A DNA stretch of 64,000 nucleotides, taken from the NCBI GenBank assembly GCA_004431415.1, contig QPMI01000062.1, positions 186,001 through 250,000 on the forward strand. Reading direction: 5' to 3'. Position 1 is the first letter of the stretch. Each line of letters opens with the position of its first letter. Source of the stretch: Cyanophora paradoxa CCMP329 (taxonomy: Eukaryota; Plantae; Glaucophyta). The position numbers were made by a program, and so were the translations under genes. This document shows positions 35,075 to 44,487 of this stretch, in pieces. Below the pieces are notes generated by a model that had not been told where the DNA came from, did no database searches, and saw only the letters and a list, made by a program, of their open reading frames with translations.

Positions 35075-38000
35075 TCAGCCGTTTCCGTAGGAGGCGCTCT
35101 TGTGCTTTGCCCTGCGCGCGAGGGCCGCGTCAGGAGGGCCGGCGCAGGGGTCGGGGGCGGCCCGGCGGGTCGGTGATGGGCTCGAGGGGGCGCGGGCGCT
35201 GGCGGGCGCACATGAAGCGGAAGCCCTCGGGGACGGGGCCCAGCAGCATCTCCGAGATCTGCGGCGGCGGGGGTCACACCTCCCGGCCCGAAGTTCTGGG
35301 CCCGGGGGCGCGGCGGGGGCGGGGGCGGGGGGCGGGGGGCGGGGCGGGCCTTGACCCAGTCGCGGGAGTCGTCGGAGCAGAGGAGGTCCTCGAGGTCGGA
35401 GCGGGCGCAGAACTTGGGCGGCCGGTCGTTGATGCGCTGCGGCAGCACCTCGAGGAGCCCCGCGGGGATGTAGCGGCACGTGTACGAGAGCCACTGCACC
35501 GCCGCCGTCAGCGCGGGGCCGCAGCGAGGGGCCGTCGGGCGGGGCGGGGGCGGGCCTCGAGGAGGAAGCGGCGGGTGTTCTCGACGCCCTTGTCGTCGGA
35601 GCCCCAGTGGTCGAGGCCGTAGTTGACGAAGTCGCGGCAGAGGTCGAGGCGCTCCCCCGCCGAGATGTCCCACGTCCGCCGCTCCTTGATCTCCGTGAAG
35701 ATCCACGGCTTCAGCAGCGCCTGCGCCGCCCCTCGGCGGGGGCGCGGGGAGGGGCGGGACGGGGGGCGGGCGGCGCACGCCGCGGGCGACCATGCAGGTC
35801 GCGATCTTCCCGGACTCCATGCGCGCCCAGTACTGCCCGCGAGGGAGTGGGCGGGAGGCAGGCGGGGCGACGGCGGCGGGCGGCGCACGTCCTCCCAGCC
35901 GAGGATGTCCCCGTTGCCGATGACGGGCACCGGCGAGCCCTCCGCCACCCGGTTGATGTACTCCCAGTCTGCGCCCCGCCCTCCCCCGTGAGCCCCGGAA
36001 GCAGAGGGGCGGGGCGGGGCGGGGCAGGCCGGCGAGCTTGTGGTAGCGCTGCAGCCGCGAGCGACCGTGGACCTGCGGGAAGGGGCTCGCAATCCGAAGG
36101 CAGGGGCCGGCTCGAGCGGGGCGGACGGTGACGGCGGAGGCGCCCCACTGGGCGACGAGGGGCGCGAACTTGTGCGCCACCTGCCGCTTGTCGTCCCAGC
36201 CCTGCCCCGCCCCGCCCGCCCGCTCGAACTCGCGGGGGGGAAGAGAGCAGGGGCGCGGGGCGCGGCCGCACGGTGCGCATCTTGACGGTGACGGGGCAGG
36301 AGAGGATGGAGGACCTGCCGGCCGGCCGGGGTCGATGCGGCCCAGCGCAGAAGAGGCGGGGCGGGCCGGGCCCGGGGCGGGGCGGGGCGGGGCGCACATG
36401 CTGCGGACGACGCCCTCGAAGCGCTGGGGCCGGTTCAGGAGGGCCGAGCCCCCGCCGCGGTTCACCACGATGTCGATCGGGCAACCGCTGCGCGCGAGGG
36501 GCGTCGGGGGGGAGCGGCGTGGGGGAAGCGGCGATGCGGGGGCACCAGTTGAGGTCCACGAAGTCGACGTCGGGGATGTGGTCCTCGATCAGCTCCGCCA
36601 CCCTGCGCCCCGCTCAGCGGCGCCGGCTGGCCCGGACCCGCTGGGGGGCCCCCGCACTTGGCGAGGAGCTCGGGGACGCTGCCGCAGAGCTGGACGCCGA
36701 AGACGCCCTCCGAGCGGTGCCGCCGCAGCAGCGCCCACTCCGAGTTCTGCCCCGCCAGCAGGTTCGGCGCCATCGCCATCTCCCCGCACGTGATCTCGCA
36801 CCCCAAGCCCTGCCCCGCCCCGCCCCGCCCTCGCCAGAGGCCCCCGGCGCCGGCGGAGGGGGAAGGGGCCAGGGGCGCGCCCTGCAGATGCGGCGGAAGG
36901 GCGTGTTCCCGACCGTCGTCAGCGGCGCCAGGTACGTCTTCCCCGCGAAGTCCACCTGCACGAGAGGCCCCCGCCCGTCGGCCACGCCGCGAGAGGGGCG
37001 GGGCGGGGTGGGGCGGGGCGGGGTGGGGCGGGGCGGGCCCTGCGCTTCTCGGCGGGCCGGAGGCGGGCCTCGCGGTCGTGGCTCCCCTGGTCCAGCTCCT
37101 CCTTCTTCCGCTCCTCCGCCGCCGCGGCGGGCTCCTTCACCGACGCCTCCTGCGTCGCCGGCTCCGCCGCATCCTCCTCCTCCTCCTTCTCCTCCCCGCC
37201 GTGCTGCCCCTCCTCCTCGGCCGCTGCACGCTCCGGGGCCTCCTCCCCCGCCGCGCACTCCTCCCCCTCGCACCCCTCCAGCTCCTTCGCCTGCGCAGGC
37301 CGGCGGGTGAGGGCGGGTGACGCGCGGCGGGCGCGCGAAGATTGCGGACCTGTCCGGAGGTGCCGCCGGCGCCGGCGCCGGATCCGGAGCGGTTGCGCTC
37401 CTTCATGATGGCGTCCCACTCGGCCTGGAAGCGGTCCGAGCGGGCGAACGAGAGCTGCTTCTTCCGCAGTCGCGTCTGCAGATCCCGCGTGAACACGTTC
37501 AGCAGCGGGTCCTTCCACGCCGCGAACTTCTGCGGCCCGGGGTCAGCTCCGCCGCCGCCTCAGCTCGGGGGCCACACGCACCACTTCGTCGACGACGTTC
37601 TTGCCGTCGCGGATGTGGGTGGCGCCGTAGCGGCAGAGGATGCCGAAGGGGCACTTGCCGCTCGCCTCGAAGTGCCTGCAGGAGGGCCCGAGGTCCGCCG
37701 GCTTGCTCGCCAGGTACTTAGCCACGTCGTGGCTGAAGTGGCACTTCTCCCCGTGCGCGCACTCCTCCCCCAGCGCAACCTGCGCGCACGCCGCCGGTGA
37801 GCGCGCCCCGCGCCCGGCCCGCGCCGGCACCGGCGCCCACGCACCGTGAAGCACATCTTCTGGTCGCGCGCCGGCTTGTCCTGCGGCGCCGCGCGGATGC
37901 GCTCCCGCTTCTTGCGCTTGCCGCCGCCCCCCTGCTGGTCTCGGTCTCCCTTGCGCTTCTTGCCCTCGGCATCGTCGCCTGCTCCCGCTCCGCCTTCCGC

Positions 38001-38364
38001 TGGCGCCTCGCCGTTCGCGGCGCCGCCTCCCGCGGGCGCCTCTGGGGCTGAACTCGCGCTTGCCGCTGCCTCGCTTCCCGCGCTGGCGGCCGCGCCGTCG
38101 CCCGCGGGCACCTGCTTCGGTTGTCGCGGCTTGACGCGCAGGTACCTGCCGGCAGTGCGATCAGCGCAAGCGGCGCGTACGTGGGCTTCGGAGCTCACTC
38201 GCGCTTCACTGGAGCAATACCGAGCGCCTGCAGCTCTGCGGGAGGCGTGTCATAGCTAAGCGGGCGATCGAAGGGGGAAGCAGACCTGCGCCGGTCATGG
38301 AAAGCAGCGCGGCCGGATCCTCTCTCGAGATACCTTCAAACGCCATCGCCGCCTCGCTGGCCAT
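35075..38364 (-). CDS. DUS3: tRNA-dihydrouridine(47) synthase
   Basis: Two CCCH fingers, [77 protein letters not shown]. Confidence 0.95.
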
Positions 38365-38477
38365 CTTTCCCGCTCGCTCGCGCTCACGGCCGGCAAGTGC
38401 TGAAGCGGGGTACGCATGCTCGTCTTGTTGAGCTCGCTAGGCCTGTCAGCGAGGCTTTCAGCAGCTCGCCGCCATCC

Positions 38478-38511
38478 GATTCAGCTCCGTGAGAGATTCA
38501 GCTCCGTGAGA
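38478..38511. repeat. Perfect 17-bp tandem duplication GATTCAGCTCCGTGAGA
   Basis: Read directly; located in the DUS3/TIR divergent promoter region. Confidence 0.9.
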
Positions 38512-38712
38512 GCCTACTTGCTTGGTCGCCGCCGGTCGGCGCCGCTGTACCGACGCTTTTTTAGTAGCTGCACGGTATCCGCGGTTCCATGCGCTAAGGG
38601 CCGGATTCACTGCGGAGCGCGTCAGCACAGTGTCATTACGGATTTCGGCTCTCGCGCACGAGGCCGGCTGAGTGCGGACCGAGCCTTCTTCGCCAAACTT
38701 GAAACGTTAGCT

Positions 38713-41269
38713 ATGGCGAACGCGGCGGCCCTACGGCCCGTCTTCATTAGCTACTCGTCGAAGGTGAGCCGAACGTCGCGAGGAAAGCCTCGGCGTGGCT
38801 CGGCCGACACGGCAGGGCCACACGCGCAGGACAAGGAGTTCGCGTGGAAGCTGGTGGAGGACCTGCGCCTCAACGGCCTCGAGCAGTCCATTTGGATCGG
38901 TGCGACCGTCTCGCGCTACATTCGTGTGCTCCGGCCCTGAGCTGAGCCCGCCCGGGGCCCGCCCGCGCCGCGGCCGCAGACCGGGACTTCATCGAGGCGG
39001 GGCAGACGGGGTGGCGGGAGCAGATCGTGAAGGAGCTGAACTACTGCCGGGTGGCGATCTGCGTGCTCAGCGCCAACTACTACGAGTCCGTCCCCTGCGC
39101 GAAGGAGGCGAACGGCCTCTCCGACCGCGAGGAGCGCCGCGAGGACCTCGTCGTCCGCCCCGCCCCGTACCCCCCTCGCCCTCCCCCCTGCCTCTGACGG
39201 GAGGCAGATCATCCCGCTGCGGTACACGATGGATCCCATCCCCGAGAAGCTCCAGGTGGCCTCGTACCCCCCGCCCCCTCCCCTCCCCCCCTCCCCCCCT
39301 CCCCTCCCCCCCTCCCCCCCCTCCCCTCCCCGTGTCCCTCTCACGCCGGCGCCGCAGTGGGTCTTCGACTCGAGCAAGCAGTGGTGGGCGCCGGGCACCC
39401 GGCGGGGCGCGGGGACGGCAGCTGACGGGCGGGGCAGGGTGGACTTCTCGGAGAAGGGGGCGCGGGCGGGCCGCTGCGGGCGACTACCCGGCGGCCTTCC
39501 GCGCCCTCCTCGACCCCTCTGCAAGAGCCTCGGCCTCGCCGCCCCCGCGCCCTCCGCTTCTCCGGCGACCCCGACGCCGAGGGCGAGCGCGCCCCGGCCC
39601 GGGCCCCGGCGCCGGCCACGGGGGCGCGCCGCCGCCGCAGCGGTCGATGCCCGCTCGTGCGCCGGCCGGCGACGCGGACGCGGCGGCGCAGGCGGCGGTG
39701 CGGAGCCGGGAGTACCTCGAGCAGGCGGTGCGCGGTGCCGCCGCCCTCGGGCGCGAGCGCGAGCTCGGCGCCGCTCCGGCCGAAGCGTTGCGCAGGACGG
39801 AAAAGAAGCGGAGCAGCTGAAGGCGATCTTCCGCGGTCTGGACTTCAACCAGGACGCCCTCATCACCCTCGACGACCTCAACCTGCCCTTCGCCGGCAAC
39901 CGCGTCAAGGCGCCGGCCCCCGCGCCCCGCCTTCTTCCCTCCCTCGCTCCCTGTCTTTCCTGAGCGGGGCGGGGCGGGGCCAGATCGGGGCCTTCATGAC
40001 GGCGTTCGGGCTGCGCCTCAACGGCCGCCTCGAGGCACGCACCTTCGTCGAGGTGACCCGTCCCCTCCCCCCCCCCTCCCACCACCCCCCTCCCGCTCCC
40101 GCGCAGTGGACTCACCGCCCGCGCCGCAGAAACTGGTCGGCATCGAGGTCATGGAGGGCCAGAACGGTGAGCGCGCGCCCCTTCGCGCAGTGCCGCGCAG
40201 CGGCCGCTGCGCCTGAATCTGGCCTCCCGCCGCGTGCAGTGCCCTCGCAGTTGAAACCGGTGCATGTCTCCCCAGGGGACCTCCCGCTCAGGTGCCCCCC
40301 GCTGGGAGATGACGGGGTGGCGGCGGGCGGCAGGTGGCCGAGGCTTTCCAGTGGCTGGTCGAAACGACGAGGGCGGATGCGGCGGACCCGCGGCAGCGCG
40401 CCGAGGTGCCCCTCCGCCCGCCCCCGGGGCCCCTCGGCGCCGCGCTCAGCCGCCGTGGCGCCGTCGACGCGGCGCGCGGCAGCTGCTCTTCCGCTACTAC
40501 GACCGGAACGCGAGCGGCGGCCTCTCCTTCGACGAGGTCCTCGCCGTCATCCAGGTGCGGGCTCGAGCGGCGCGGCTCCCCAGGGGCCGCGCCGCGCCGC
40601 TCTCCCCTCCCCGCCCGACCCCGCCGGCACAGGCCTTCCGGAAGTCCGGCGACCAGGAGTTCTCCCCCGCCGAGATCGACGAGATCCGCACCCTCTTCGA
40701 GTGCGCGGCGTCCGACGCGAGGCCGAGCCGCCGAGCGGGGCGCTGAGGGGCGGGGCGGCGGGCGCAGCGCGGTGGACGAGAACCTGGACGAGGATATCTC
40801 GCTGGAGGAGTTCGTGAAGGCCATCGAGACCCTCCCCGAGTTCAAGACGGCGTGGGAGCCGTGGGAGACCCCCGGCGGGCTCGGCCCGCCCGTCAACGCC
40901 GCCGGCGCCCCCATGGCCCGCGGCGCGAAGGGCGGCATCTACTACTGCGGGCGGAACATCGGGAAGTGCCGGTGCCGCCCCTCGGGGACCTGCGACGGGG
41001 TCTGCGGGACGGGGAGCGGCTGCCAATGCGCGGACTGCGAGGCGGCGGAGGCGGAGCGGGAGGCGAAGGGCGACGCGCCGCGCTTCAAGAGCGCGAGGCA
41101 CGCGCACGAGCTCGCCCTCCAGGTGCCGCGCTACACGGGGCAAACGTGGGGCTGCGACATCTGCAAGCAGCGGATGAAGAACTGTTGGCGCGGCAAGTCC
41201 TTCCACTGCCCTCAGTGCAAGTTCGACATGTGCTGGGCCTGCTACACCGCGGAGAGCGGCACAGGGTAG
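38713..41269 (+). CDS. TIR-domain + EF-hand + Cys-rich motif + ZZ-like zinc-finger protein
   Basis: TIR: VFISYSSKDKEFAWKLVEDL...IWID...WREQIVKELNYCRVAICVLSANYYESVPCAKE...IIPL. EF loops: DFNQDALITLDD, DRNASGGLSFDE, DENLDEDISLEE. Cys-rich: YYCGR..C.C....CDGVCG...GCQCADC. Finger: HAHEL..WGCDIC...FHCPQCKFDMCWACY. Confidence 0.88.
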
Positions 41270-41640
41270 CTGCAGCCGTAGCCGGATTTGTCTGTAACAC
41301 GGTGCCACGCCGTGACGCTGATTGGATTCAACTTGGCAAAGCCATTACAGTCCAGCCATTCACAGCCAGAAAAAGGCGCATATGCATGTGCACATGCACA
41401 TGGAACGACGTCGACGGGGGCGGATAGCCTAAAGCTAGCAGGGTTCAACTTGGCAACTCGAGCCGGCGAGCTCGGGGGTAGAATCGAGTGCGAGGAGGAT
41501 TGCTAAAGGTGCCACGGTGGAAGGAGGTTCCGGATCTTCGGAAGCCTTGCTGGGGGGGCGCAACCCCCTTCAGGCTTGCAGCAAGCAATCAATTTCGAAT
41601 GTGTGGAGAAATTCACAATAGCCTAGTAGCTGGCCCAGGG
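41270..41640. repeat. Palindrome-ladder intergenic block
   Basis: 16-bp palindrome TGCATGTGCACATGCA at 41383-41398; TTCAACTTGGCAA twice; CACGGTGCCAC; GTGCCACGGTGGA. Confidence 0.7.
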
Positions 41641-41682
41641 GAGGGGCCGAGGGGGTCGAGGGGGCTGGGGGCCGGCCGGCGG

Positions 41683-44487
41683 CTAGAAGCTGGTGGAGGG
41701 GGTGTCGCGCCAGTCGGGGTGCGTCGGGGGCGACGGCGGCCGCCGCGCCATCGCCCGCCCCGCCGCGGGCTCCTGCGCCCCCGGCGCCAGCGTCACCTCC
41801 CCGCCGTCCTCCGAGCACTTCAGCACCTGCGCCACCTGCGAGCGCGGGGGATCAGACGGGCCGGCGAGCGCCCCGGCCCGGCCCCCGCGCGCCTTGGAGA
41901 CGCAGCCGAGGGAGGAGATGGTGCGCAGCAGCCAGCTGGTGAGCGCGCCGCCCTCGGCGGGGGCCGCCGCGGCCCCCGCCGCGCTGTACGGGTTCACCTG
42001 AGCCGGAGCCGGCGCCGGCGCAGGTGCAGGCGGGCTCGCGGCGGGGCCGCGGCTCGTGCCGGGCGTGAAGCGCGCGACGAACTGGTCGGCGGCGGCGCCC
42101 TCGGAGGGGCGGGCGGGGGCGGTGCGGCGGGGCCTCTCGCGGGGGCGTCGCCGGCTTCGCGCGGGCGACGTCGGGGAGAAGCCCTGCGGGAAGGGCGGCC
42201 CGGGGGGCGGGGGCGGCGCCTGCGCGCGGGGCACAGAGTGAGCGGGGACGCGGGGGCTCGCAAGGGGCGGGCGGGGCGGACGGGGGCGGTGATGGAGGAG
42301 GGGTGGACGCCCCAGCGGGCGTCGACCTCGGCGGCGCGGCGGGCCATCTGGATCTCGTGCATGAGGCGCAGGATCGAGTCCTCCTGCTCGCGCAGCCGCG
42401 CCCGCATCTCCGCCTTCTCCGCCAGCAGCGCCGCGTTCGTGCTCCGCAGCTCCTCCACCGCCGCAGGGTCCGCCCCGGGCGAGCCCGGCGCACCCGCCGG
42501 CTCCCCCGGCGCCTGCCCCTCGGGGGCGGCGGGGGGCGTCCAGTAGGGCGGACCCGGCGGCGAGGGGGACGGGCTCTGCGCCCCTTCCGCCCCCGCAGGG
42601 GGCAGCGGCGTCGGGCTCGCGGCGGCGCCGGGCGACTCGGCGGGCGGGGCGGCGGGCGGGCGCCCGGGTGCCGGAGGTGGAGGGCTGCGGGGTACAGGGG
42701 CGGGCTGCCGGCCGAGGAGGAGCCGCGGCGGCCGCCGGCCGGCGAGCTCGCGGCGCCGGCGCCGGGGGCGGGGGCGGAGGAGGGGCGGAGCCCGCGCGGG
42801 GCGGCGGGGAGGAGGAGGGGCGGGGCGGCGGGGCGGGGCCGGCGGCGAGGGCGACGGCGACGGAGCGGATGATGGTGCCGCCCTCGATGCGGGGCGGGTC
42901 GGGCAGCGCGGGGGGCACGGAGGCGGCCGGCGGCACGTCGGGGCCGGCGAGAGGCGGAAGACGTCGAGCGGGCTCTGCCCCGCCCCTCGGGCGGGCCGGC
43001 GAGAGGCTCCCCGGGCCGCCAGCAGCCGCCGCGCGTGCTCCGCGTCCGCCTGGATGGCCGCCATGGCGGCGGCGGCCGCCGCCGCCGCCCGCTCGCGCTC
43101 GCGCTGGAGCTCCTGCTGCGCGCGCTGCAGCGCCGCCCGCCGCCGGGCCTCCTCCGCGTCCTCCCCCGGGGCCGCCCCGTCCCCTCCCCGTCGTCCTCGT
43201 CGTCGTCCAGGTCGTCCTGCCCGCGCGTGAGTGGCGGCGCGGCGGGTCGGCGGGGCGGGGCACCATGTCGGGGACGCTGACCCAGCGGTGCCGGGCCCCG
43301 CCGCCGCCATCAGCCGGCTCGCCTGCTCCTGCAGCTCCTGCGCCCCGCCCGCACGCCCGTCGGCCCGAGCCGAGCGGCGCTGGGGCGGGCAGGGTCCGCG
43401 GGGCGCACGAGGGCGCGCATGCGGCGGCGGGCCTCCTCCTCCTCGCCCTTAAGGCGCTGCGGGCGGGGCCGGGGCGTGGGCGGGGCGCGGGGCGGGGCGG
43501 GGCGGGCGGGGCGCCGGGGCCGCACGAGCTCGGCCTCGCGCTGGAGGCGGCGCTCCTCGAACTGCTGCGCCAGCGCCGACTGGTACTCCCGCCGCGCCCA
43601 CTCCTTTGCCGCCCGCTCCGACCCCCCGGCGACGCCGGCGGCGCCGCCAGCAGCGACTCCGAGCTCGAGGGCGCCCGCGGGAGCGCCCGCTCCGAGGCGG
43701 GGGCCTCCGGGGAGCGCGAGGCGGCCTCGGCGGGGGCGCGCTCGGCGGCGCTCGCCTCGGCCTCCTCCGCGATGGCGGCCTCGAGGGCGGCGGCCGCCTC
43801 GGCGAAGCCCGGCGAGGGGTGCGCCTCCAGGCGCGCCTCCGCCTGCCGCAGGATCGCCGCCAGCTTCCGGCCCCGCACGCTCCCGATCCGCTCGCCCAGC
43901 TGCGGGCTCCCCCCGCGCTCGCTGCCGGCCGGCGGCGAGGCCGAGTCCGCGAGCGCCCGCAGCGGGTCCTCCAGCGGCGGCATCGCCGGCGGCGGCGACC
44001 CGGCGTCGCGGTCCGAGGCCCCCGCCTGGAGCAGCGCGTTCAGGCCCGAGAGGCTGTCCCGCTCCACGTAGGCCCCCAGCTCCTTCCGCAGCTCCCCGAG
44101 CAGCGCGAGCTCCTGCCGGCGCGTTCGGGCGGACCACGCGCGCTCACGCGCGATTTCGACGGCGCGTTCCGCACCTGCGGCGAGCGGCCGTAGTTCGCCG
44201 CCGCGAAGCCAGTGTCATCCAAAGGCTCTGTTGTGGCACGAGTCGGAGGTCGCGCGGGGTTCGCCTCGAGGCGGCCGCGGCGTTGGTGAAAACGCACCTC
44301 CGTTCACAGTACGAGGTGTTGCGGTGCCGCCCTGGGAAATAGGACTGAGCGCACCATCGGAAGACCGTGAGAGCGGCGGATCGTCGAGGTCGCGCGGCGA
44401 CCGGCCGTTGGCGAGAGCGTGCAGCTCTTCCAACCGCGCTTGCCGCGGCCGCCGCTCCCTGCGCCGCTTCTCACCGGTGTCGCTCAT
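41683..44487 (-). CDS. Unknown low-complexity / coiled-coil protein
   Basis: Coding-like exons (KEWARREYQSALAQQFEERR, EKAEMRARLREQEDSILRLMHEIQ, SWLLRTISSLGCVSK) separated by introns typical of this window. Confidence 0.65.

Follow-up and report, generated by a model that had tools for sequence, protein, structure and literature searches.

A predicted TIR–EF-hand–zinc-finger protein of the glaucophyte Cyanophora paradoxa as a candidate Ca2+-switched NAD+ hydrolase

Introduction

Can a TIR domain and its own Ca2+ sensor reside in a single polypeptide of a glaucophyte alga? The question is raised by a locus of Cyanophora paradoxa CCMP329, located at positions 38713-41269 (plus strand) of a 64,000-nucleotide stretch of contig QPMI01000062.1 (the window), where a first-pass annotation made from the sequence alone had proposed a Ca2+-gated TIR signalling enzyme. 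TIR enzymes of bacteria, plants and animals are activated by induced assembly, and the inputs to this switch vary by lineage. In plants, Ca2+ and nicotinamide adenine dinucleotide (NAD+) are normally linked through separate proteins: TIR products are followed by EDS1 and the channels of helper nucleotide-binding leucine-rich repeat receptors (NLRs), and these by Ca2+.

The gene model at this locus carries, in this order, a TIR_2-type TIR domain, a linker, a block of four EF-hands and a composite of two Cys-rich modules. Judged by its domains and by analogy with known proteins, we tentatively favour, at somewhat less than an even chance, one gene for a multidomain TIR protein that is specific to its lineage and is predicted to act as a Ca2+-switched NAD+ hydrolase (NADase). 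The overall interpretation of the first-pass annotation is thus partly supported.

The gene model and its TIR domain

The whole coding span (38713..41269, plus strand) opens with the ATG at 38713, closes with the stop codon 41267-41269 and consists of 15 exons and 14 introns. It corresponds to the public C. paradoxa model tig00000241_g20943.t1, whose EukProt record (P0001, 520 aa) was used for every full-length analysis; no encoding contig is on record for P0001. The link between locus and model came from a word search, in which the open reading frame (ORF) of the last exon (40334-41266; residues 146-311 scored) returned one protein only, P0001, at 100% identity. The identifier tig00000241_g20943 is also included in the supplementary tables of the genome paper (PMC6704402). 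Exon coordinates were obtained by placing P0001 on the window one exon at a time, and the splice sites were verified by translating adjacent exon pairs and comparing them with P0001. The introns are 49-102 nt each, 13 of them GT-AG and one GC-AG, and the consensus at the locus is mostly G^GTG(C/A)G...GCAG^ (^, splice site). A three-frame reading of 38713-41269 accordingly gives short open pieces between GT...AG intervals. Genes of this genome have 9.2 introns on average, with a mean intron of 86 bp, and the models were produced with BRAKER1/Augustus trained on RNA-seq (PMC6704402).

The TIR domain (residues 1-129; 38713..39456, plus strand) is encoded by exons 1-5 (38713-38763, 38830-38899, 38980-39152, 39208-39255 and 39358-39383) and by the first codons of exon 6, which begins at 39438. 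Pfam assigns TIR_2 (PF13676) to residues 10-129 of P0001 at 74.8 bits (E 1.1e-20), above the cut-off of 28, and TIR (PF01582) matches at 34.6 bits, above the cut-off of 21.3; single exons searched alone gave partial, sub-threshold matches only, to TIR_2, EF-hand and C1_2. The motifs FISYS, WID and SxxCxxE, on which the TIR had initially been recognised, were all recovered in exons 1-3, as 'VFISYSSK' in exon 1, 'SIWI^D' over the exon 2/3 junction and 'SVPCAKE' in exon 3. At the other end of the domain, the exon 5/6 junction rebuilds the C-terminal TIR motif of the family, 'KQW^VDFS' against 'LQY(I/V)DW' in the paralogues.

The relatives of this domain were ranked with a profile built from a family alignment of five proteins (A1), namely P0001, three Cyanophora paralogues and one Spironema protein. 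Its best solved match is the NAD+ hydrolase AbTIR (8g83/7uwg; E 5-6e-9, with the Glu aligned), followed by TcpB, AtTIR, Cat1, RPS4 and Roq1, and the TIRs of TLR1/2/6 and MyD88 score lower. Among the defence TIR models of PADLOC, PDC-S66 is the best match (E 4.6e-14), followed by SAVED_TIR and ThsB. Together with the TIR_2 score, these matches bear out the earlier description of a short, bacterial-like TIR.

As also proposed at the outset, a Glu occupies the position that is catalytic in TIR NADases. Residues 8-109 align to the RPS4 TIR (4c6r; phmmer against PDB) with 'ESVPCAKE' over 'ESVWCVRE', and Glu83 (codon 39105..39107, plus strand; motif S-V-P-C-A-K-E) is aligned with the Glu of RPS4 'WCVRE' and of AbTIR 'WTNYE' and is invariant in A1. 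We take the catalytic residues of these two enzymes to be RPS4 E88 and AbTir E208. The conserved Glu is needed for the activity of AbTIR, TcpO and ThsB (bioRxiv 10.1101/2022.09.19.508568). Since the Glu is kept at the catalytic position, the Cyanophora TIR is predicted to cleave NAD+ and/or to make ADP-ribose (ADPR)-type signals.

P0001 has no NB-ARC, LRR or SAM domain in Pfam and no transmembrane segment (highest 19-residue Kyte-Doolittle mean, 0.87), in agreement with the first reading. An NLR-type architecture is therefore ruled out by the lack of NB-ARC and LRR matches, and a transmembrane or secreted protein by the low hydropathy.

The linker and the EF-hand block

An Ala/Arg/Pro-rich linker (39438..39727, plus strand) follows the TIR and is formed by exon 6 (39438-39642), an intron of 49 nt (intron 6) and exon 7 (39692-39727). 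Of all parts of the model the linker is the most doubtful, and its exact sequence should not be relied on. In composition, its 74 residues (130-203) include 17 Ala, 14 Arg and 14 Pro, as expected from the Pro/Ala linker described previously.

The four-EF-hand block (residues 204-~390; 39796..40880, plus strand) is encoded by exons 8-15 and is recognised by Pfam EF-hand_7 and by phmmer against PDB. The loops were compared with the pattern D-x-[DNS]-x-[DNSG]-x6-[DE], in which positions 1, 3, 5, 9 and 12 provide oxygen ligands, and three of the four (residues 219-230, 314-325 and 357-368) fit it. In the EF1 loop, DFNQDALITLDD (residues 219-230; 39841..39876, plus strand), all five ligand positions are filled, with Asp at position 12 and Ala at position 6. 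The EF2 loop, LRLNGRLEARTF (residues 251-262), is degenerate and does not fit the pattern. The EF3 loop, DRNASGGLSFDE (residues 314-325; 40501..40536, plus strand), is fully canonical and lies in EF-hand_1 and EF-hand_6 matches, and the EF4 loop, DENLDEDISLEE (residues 357-368; 40775..40810, plus strand), has canonical ligands with Glu at position 6 and lies in EF-hand_7 and EF-hand_8 matches. EF-hand_7 covers residues 305-373 of P0001 (47.2 bits, E 2.8e-12; cut-off 30) and EF-hand_1 reaches 34 bits (cut-off 25.4), both above threshold, and the EF1 exon searched alone gives a sub-threshold EF-hand match. From their ligand sets, three EF loops look able to bind Ca2+.

The best solved relatives of the block belong to two groups. 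All four hands (residues 200-374) match the calmodulin-like domain of the calcium-dependent protein kinase (CDPK) CDPK1 in the PDB search, and EF3-4 (residues 303-378) match GCAP1, frequenin, NCS-1 and hippocalcin. Of the calcineurin-B/recoverin-like block with three EF loops first described here, the three pattern-fitting loops and a similarity to neuronal calcium sensor (NCS) proteins and CDPKs have stood, and membership of the NCS family has not: the block is internal (residues 204-380), hence without N-myristoylation, its similarity is one of sequence only, and its degenerate hand is EF2. NCS proteins are stand-alone chains of about 190 aa with a myristoylation site at the N-terminus, and in them the degenerate hand is EF1.

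A micro-exon in the connector between EF2 and EF3 (40240-40259; 20 nt, residues 277-284 'VPSQLKPV') has a weak coding signal and may be an artefact of the predictor; no EF loop is affected by it.

The C-terminal Cys-rich modules

The first of the two modules, CYS1 (residues 396-444; 40892..41038, plus strand), contains eight Cys in the pattern VN..G.P..G..YYCGR..C.C..CDGxCGxxxGCxCxxC. Its central part, 'YYCGR..CDGVCG..GCQCADC' at residues 412-444, is the YYCGR...CDGxCG...CQCxxC module that had been picked out by eye. The CYS1 region (396-450) recurs in tandem, in three to five copies, in the RING-finger proteins P0003, P0007, P0016, P0022, P0088, P0094 and P0147, whose sources include a brittle star (P0003, XP_072049397.1), the euglenid Rhabdomonas (P0007) and several metagenomes; wherever Pfam found anything in CYS1-repeat proteins, it was a RING finger. 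The repeat of about 50 residues, VN..G.P..G..YYCGR...(S/C)DGxCGPxNG(P/C)xCxxC, was also seen in P0043. In addition, CYS1 and CYS2 occur together as a unit (396-515), once or twice, in P0017, P0115 and P0149. Among the 34 CYS1 copies of the C-terminal alignment (A3), from which CYS2-only pieces were left out and which was used for folding, C414, G415, C433, C441 and C444 and the YCG/CGP/G scaffold are invariant or nearly so. CYS1 has no match in Pfam, PDB sequences, Foldseek, VIA-align or Atlas, and appears to be an undescribed, so far unnamed domain family found among RING-type proteins of protists and echinoderms.

The second module, CYS2 (residues 465-512; 41099..41242, plus strand), is a C1/DC1/ZZ-like cross-brace zinc finger with the putative ligand pairs H465/H467, C483/C486, C501/C504 and C509/C512. 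This pattern, HxH...CxxC...CxxC...CxxC, fits that of C1_2 (PF03107), HxH...CxxC...CxxC...(H/C)xxC, to which residues 464-512 match at 21.7-22.7 bits, below the cut-off of 26; the first pair is HxH here and CxxC in the relatives. ZZ (PF00569) gave no match on P0001 at E<=1, and the relative P0149 reaches 20.7 bits against a cut-off of 21.4. Profile comparison of A3 with PDB returned the KKT2 zinc finger (6tly, E 4.5e-6), a DC1 domain (1v5n, E 3e-4) and the Nbr1 ZZ domain. An AlphaFold2 (AF2) model on A3 has a mean predicted local distance difference test (pLDDT) score of 73.8, with 77-92 over CYS1. In VIA-align, where only model residues 92-136 were matched and all Z scores were below 5, this model superposed weakly on the zinc-binding domain of ClpX (Z 4.9) and on the ZZ domains of p62, Nbr1, BIG, KCMF1, CBP and HERC2 (Z 2.7-3.8, with 24-35% identity over 34-37 residues). 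Foldseek of the C-terminal model against PDB found nothing at E<=0.001, and the Atlas shape search gave template-modelling scores <0.4; in the Atlas feature search the C-terminal part reached 0.77 (C1_2/KKT2-type clusters), and nothing usable came from the full-length protein. The top BLAST match of a published Trinity ORF of this gene is a springtail 'HERC2' (PMC6704402). The name ZZ-like, under which this finger was first recorded, is therefore loosely right, in that weak ZZ fold matches and the Nbr1 profile match agree with it. However, the ZZ cut-off was not reached and a C1/DC1-like assignment fits equally, so that membership of neither ZZ nor C1_2 is established. Both modules are presumed to bind zinc and most likely also a protein or peptide partner.

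Occurrence of the architecture in sequence databases

The full-length P0001 was compared with 1.84 billion cluster representatives by an exhaustive HMMER search (phmmer). At E<=0.001, 1139 proteins were retrieved; only P0001 itself scored below 1e-30, and the next match (84.6 bits) is TIR-only. When the best 150 of the 1139 were re-scored, none was found to pair a TIR match with an EF or a Cys-module match. One protein, P0075, was considered as a relative with TIR and CYS1 and was rejected, as its C-terminus is a formylglycine-generating-enzyme (FGE-sulfatase)-like region. Any protein with a TIR of at least 25 bits and an EF pair would have ranked in the match list, and therefore the combination is a singleton within the reach of the P0001 family. 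More distant proteins may include further TIR-EF fusions, and at least one exists, soybean SRC4. The remark that this architecture was not known from characterised proteins has thus been overtaken by SRC4, in which the pairing of TIR and EF-hand has been characterised (PMC13575729); the complete order of domains was seen in P0001 alone among the representatives searched.

Comparison with known systems

SRC4 is the closest functional analogue. It is an atypical resistance protein with the order N-terminal domain (NTD)-TIR-SNOR-EF-hand, whose EF-hand (EFh) binds Ca2+ and serves as a Ca2+-responsive module that modulates TIR-SNOR-mediated antiviral immunity; a similar behaviour was seen in artificial TIR-EFh fusions, a viral coat protein is also bound by the EFh, and no NADase assay is reported in that paper (Plant J 2026, PMC13575729). 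For the Cyanophora protein, gene model P0001 likewise predicts a TIR N-terminal to an EF-hand in one chain without NB-ARC or LRR. SRC4, however, has a plant-type TIR encoded in a TIR-NB-LRR (TNL) gene cluster, a SNOR region that is a remnant of a nucleotide-binding site, one EF pair (E1, E2) and no zinc fingers, whereas the Cyanophora protein has a TIR_2-type domain, a four-EF block of NCS/CDPK-like type, and the CYS1 and C1/ZZ-like fingers. Descent from the SRC4 lineage was rejected, because P0001 has no NB-ARC-related Pfam match that could represent SNOR and its nearest TIRs are not those of plant TNLs. The two proteins showed no sequence relationship other than their common domain families, and the top 150 matches included nothing SRC4-like, which suggests independent fusion; by sequence, the two proteins are apparently separate realisations of the same design idea.

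The nearest TIR relatives are instead TIR_2 paralogues from Cyanophora together with uncharacterised proteins that are mostly of metagenomic origin; among solved structures, bacterial TIRs are closest. Three paralogues (tig00000448_g861, tig00021108_g18315 and tig00021126_g18471; P0002, P0004 and P0005 in the alignment) and Spironema sp. TR3113 have the closest TIRs, at 30-35% identity, and share 'SVPC..E', the 'LQY(I/V)DW' end and a following Pro/Ala-rich tail with P0001. In these proteins, however, the TIR is internal (from ~residues 112-180) and is accompanied by neither EF-hand nor Cys-finger domains. AbTIR/AbTir, TcpB/BtpA, ThsB and Cat1 likewise share the TIR_2-type signature ('FISY/H..D', 'W.D' and Glu in the alpha-C region), but in these bacterial and archaeal TIR NADases the TIR either stands alone or is joined to a sensor or effector domain of prokaryotic type, and EF-hands and CYS1/CYS2 are absent from all of them.

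CDPKs set the example of an enzyme with a built-in Ca2+ sensor and provide a second analogy. The four-EF block aligns with the calmodulin-like domain of CDPK1, whereas the Cyanophora protein lacks a kinase domain, and neither a junction nor an autoinhibitory helix was identified in it. The spacing HxH...CxxC...CxxC...CxxC of the last finger is shared with ZZ, DC1 and C1 fingers (the ZZ domains of p62, Nbr1, HERC2 and KCMF1, the DC1 domain of At1g60420 and the KKT2 zinc finger), but the CYS1 module that precedes it belongs to none of these families.

Proposed mechanism

A Ca2+-gated NADase is a reasonable inference from the domains and from their analogues. In the proposed mechanism, the TIR, which keeps the catalytic Glu, would cleave NAD+ and/or make ADPR-type signals once TIRs self-associate, and would be joined to the sensor by a disordered Ala/Arg/Pro segment. 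Binding of Ca2+ to the four-EF block, through its three competent loops, would change the conformation of the block. This change, together with or in place of ligand binding at the fingers, would release or promote TIR-TIR assembly and thereby turn the enzyme on, and a Ca2+ transient would thus be coupled to NAD+-derived signalling or to NAD+ depletion. CYS1 and the C1/DC1/ZZ-like finger, which may have been borrowed from a family otherwise present in RING E3-like proteins, would bind a protein or peptide partner. In its fullest form, a single-chain TIR with Ca2+-switched NAD+ cleavage that is targeted or co-triggered by an undescribed Cys-rich peptide-binding module and that arose in glaucophytes convergently with SRC4, the proposal is unlikely to hold in every part. 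A feedback loop through Ca2+-mobilising products, as suggested in the first-pass annotation, is speculation and has no support at this locus.

Alternative explanations

The proposed mechanism requires that TIR and EF-hands be joined in one transcript, and a number of observations weigh against this or against the enzymatic role. The genome authors state that their models "will require additional manual curation" (PMC6704402), and Augustus may have fused two adjacent genes of the same strand, a TIR-only gene (exons 1-6) and an EF/Cys-finger gene starting at ATG 39647 (MPARAPAGDADAAAQAAVRSREYLEQA then DGKEAEQLK...), in which case there would be no TIR-EF-hand protein. Indeed, exon 6 (39438-39642) lacks codon periodicity (GC by phase 0.86/0.81/0.84), compared with a GC content at third codon positions of ~0.9-1.0 and a low one at second positions in the other exons, and its overall GC of 0.83 is in the intron-like range at this gene (introns 0.73-0.88, exons 0.58-0.74, intergenic DNA and untranslated regions lowest at 0.53-0.65; window mean 0.73). 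The 49-nt intron 6 is required for a shift from frame 1 to frame 2, and a frame-2 coding-like GC signature extends over 39610-39790; it includes ATG 39647, the only ATG within 39380-39800, which lies inside the predicted intron 6. A published Trinity contig of this gene, whose ORF (1-1008, 335 aa) is open at the 5' end (PMC6704402 Table S6), covers the EF-to-finger half only and starts inside the linker, without the TIR; it points to expression of this 3' half. Word searches returned only P0001 itself with the full-length protein and nothing with the junction fragment P0001:60-260, so that no independent transcript-derived protein covers the TIR-EF junction. The Cyanophora paralogues, too, have a TIR and a low-complexity tail without any further Pfam domain, and no second protein with the order TIR, EF-hand and Cys-finger was found among the 1.84 billion representatives. 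P0001 is a single, species-specific predicted model, and protist genomes often contain domain-shuffled orphans; as the representatives included no orthologue of this architecture, the fusion has no backing from conservation. An AF2 model of the whole P0001 from a single sequence was uninformative (pLDDT 37). Against a pair of fused genes, however, stands the DNA between the two halves. From the end of the TIR (~39460) to ATG 39647 there are fewer than 200 nt, at 81-89% GC, and nothing resembling intergenic or untranslated DNA, whereas gene borders in the window fall to 53-65% GC and the mean intergenic distance in the genome is 770 bp (PMC6704402). The ATG itself stands in DNA of 84-89% GC immediately next to the TIR ORF. 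Stretches of 200 nt below 62% GC, which appear to mark gene borders in the Cyanophora genome, flank the TIR gene on both sides, and none occurs between ~38766 and 41150, where the sole AT-richer 20-mer (39024-39043) is isolated within TIR exon 3. Across the window such stretches are irregularly placed, mostly ~1.5-4 kb and up to ~10 kb apart. Moreover, frame 1 is open over 39229-39963, its first stop (39961) lying in the intron downstream of the EF1 exon, and the segment 39643-39795 measures 153 nt, so that exons 6-8 stay in frame even if introns 6 and 7 are unspliced; TIR, linker and EF1 therefore share one frame with or without these two introns. An ORF from ATG 39647 would give 344 aa; the Trinity ORF has only 335 aa and is yet open at its 5' end, which indicates that the contig is 5'-truncated in the 89% GC patch and does not mark a transcription start. 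TGTAA is the poly(A) signal in green algae. The only TGTAA pentamer in 38000-42000 is at 41293, 24 nt past the stop codon, and so comes after the final stop and not between the halves, a weak argument in that the poly(A) signal of this species may differ. A scan of the linker for bacterial-type promoters and terminators was negative, which for eukaryotic DNA was to be expected and carries no information. With 14 canonical introns of the short length typical of the species, the rebuilt TIR motif, the open frame, the lack of a low-GC gap and neighbours on the opposite strand, a TIR-EF fusion on one gene with a single transcript is, on this indirect evidence, quite probable, and a chimeric model is rather unlikely.

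Even if the fusion is real, the TIR may be a non-enzymatic assembly or adaptor domain, or one that works independently of Ca2+, with EF-hands and fingers devoted to localisation or to partner binding, for example in a ubiquitin-linked context. The relatives of CYS1 and CYS2 adjoin RING fingers, and the nearest folds to CYS2 are ZZ domains of p62, KCMF1, BIG and HERC2, which by their PDB titles bind peptides or N-degrons. EF-hand domains, moreover, can be structural or target-binding, as that of SRC4, which binds the viral coat protein (PMC13575729). In the Cyanophora EF block itself, position 12 of EF1 is Asp and EF2 is non-functional. Near the active site of the TIR, Pro79 replaces the conserved Trp that stands four residues before the Glu in plant 'WCxxE' and in AbTIR 'WTNYE'. 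This Trp influences cyclisation in AbTir. Nevertheless, P0001 and all four aligned relatives retain the catalytic Glu, the nearest solved TIRs are enzymes (AbTIR, TcpB, Cat1 and plant TIRs) ahead of the TLR1/2/6 and MyD88 adaptors, and three EF loops with full ligand sets argue for retained Ca2+ binding, and a non-enzymatic or Ca2+-independent TIR is thus an unlikely alternative. A further possibility is that the fingers are the primary sensor of the trigger, a pathogen- or damage-derived peptide or neo-N-terminus, with Ca2+ as a permissive co-signal and the TIR activated by ligand-induced clustering. CYS1 and CYS2 are conserved as a unit in unrelated proteins, the fold of CYS2 resembles ZZ domains, and P0001 has no SAM, NB-ARC or coiled-coil domain in Pfam, so that no oligomerisation domain is evident in it, a point that also counts against the mechanism that we prefer. 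TIR enzymes such as those of TNLs, SARM1 and Thoeris generally need induced proximity. On the other side, the finger has no ZZ match in Pfam at E<=1 and its structural Z scores are below 5, and CYS1 is without a known fold match; a finger-triggered enzyme of this kind is distinctly improbable. The Ca2+-switched NADase encoded by one gene remains our preferred, tentative reading.

Neighbouring genes

Both genes flanking the TIR gene are on the minus strand. The divergent upstream neighbour (37546-37854, minus strand, reaching ~38198) matches Pfam zf-CCCH_DUS3L at 58.5 bits and probably encodes the N-terminal part of a homologue of tRNA-dihydrouridine synthase 3 with a DUS3L-type CCCH finger. 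It shares a lower-GC intergenic region of ~500 nt (38200-38713) with the TIR gene. Downstream, 41683-44067 has a GC content of 0.81-0.86 and contains on both strands long ORFs that overlap one another in several frames (the longest, on the minus strand, of 794 aa), none with a Pfam match. A gene of low complexity, rich in Pro, Ala, Arg and Gly and convergent with the TIR gene, may lie in this segment, or its ORFs may have arisen by chance in GC-rich DNA. Rfam gave no match in the whole 64-kb window.

Biological significance

Sensor-fused TIR proteins are already known, and a fusion to a Ca2+ sensor has been characterised in soybean. As a by-product, the CYS1 repeat defines a Cys-rich family that is so far unnamed. 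The Cyanophora fusion, if real, would be a small and soluble object for biochemical work. SRC4 shows that Ca2+–TIR coupling can work in vivo, and if a glaucophyte arrived at it by an unrelated fusion, the solution would seem to be recurrent. Ca2+ and NAD+-derived nucleotides are the two signals of immunity and stress that are most widespread. A TIR carrying its own Ca2+ sensor would, if true, join them in a minimal form, and Ca2+ transients would then be wired directly to NAD+-derived second messengers or to NAD+ depletion at the base of Archaeplastida.

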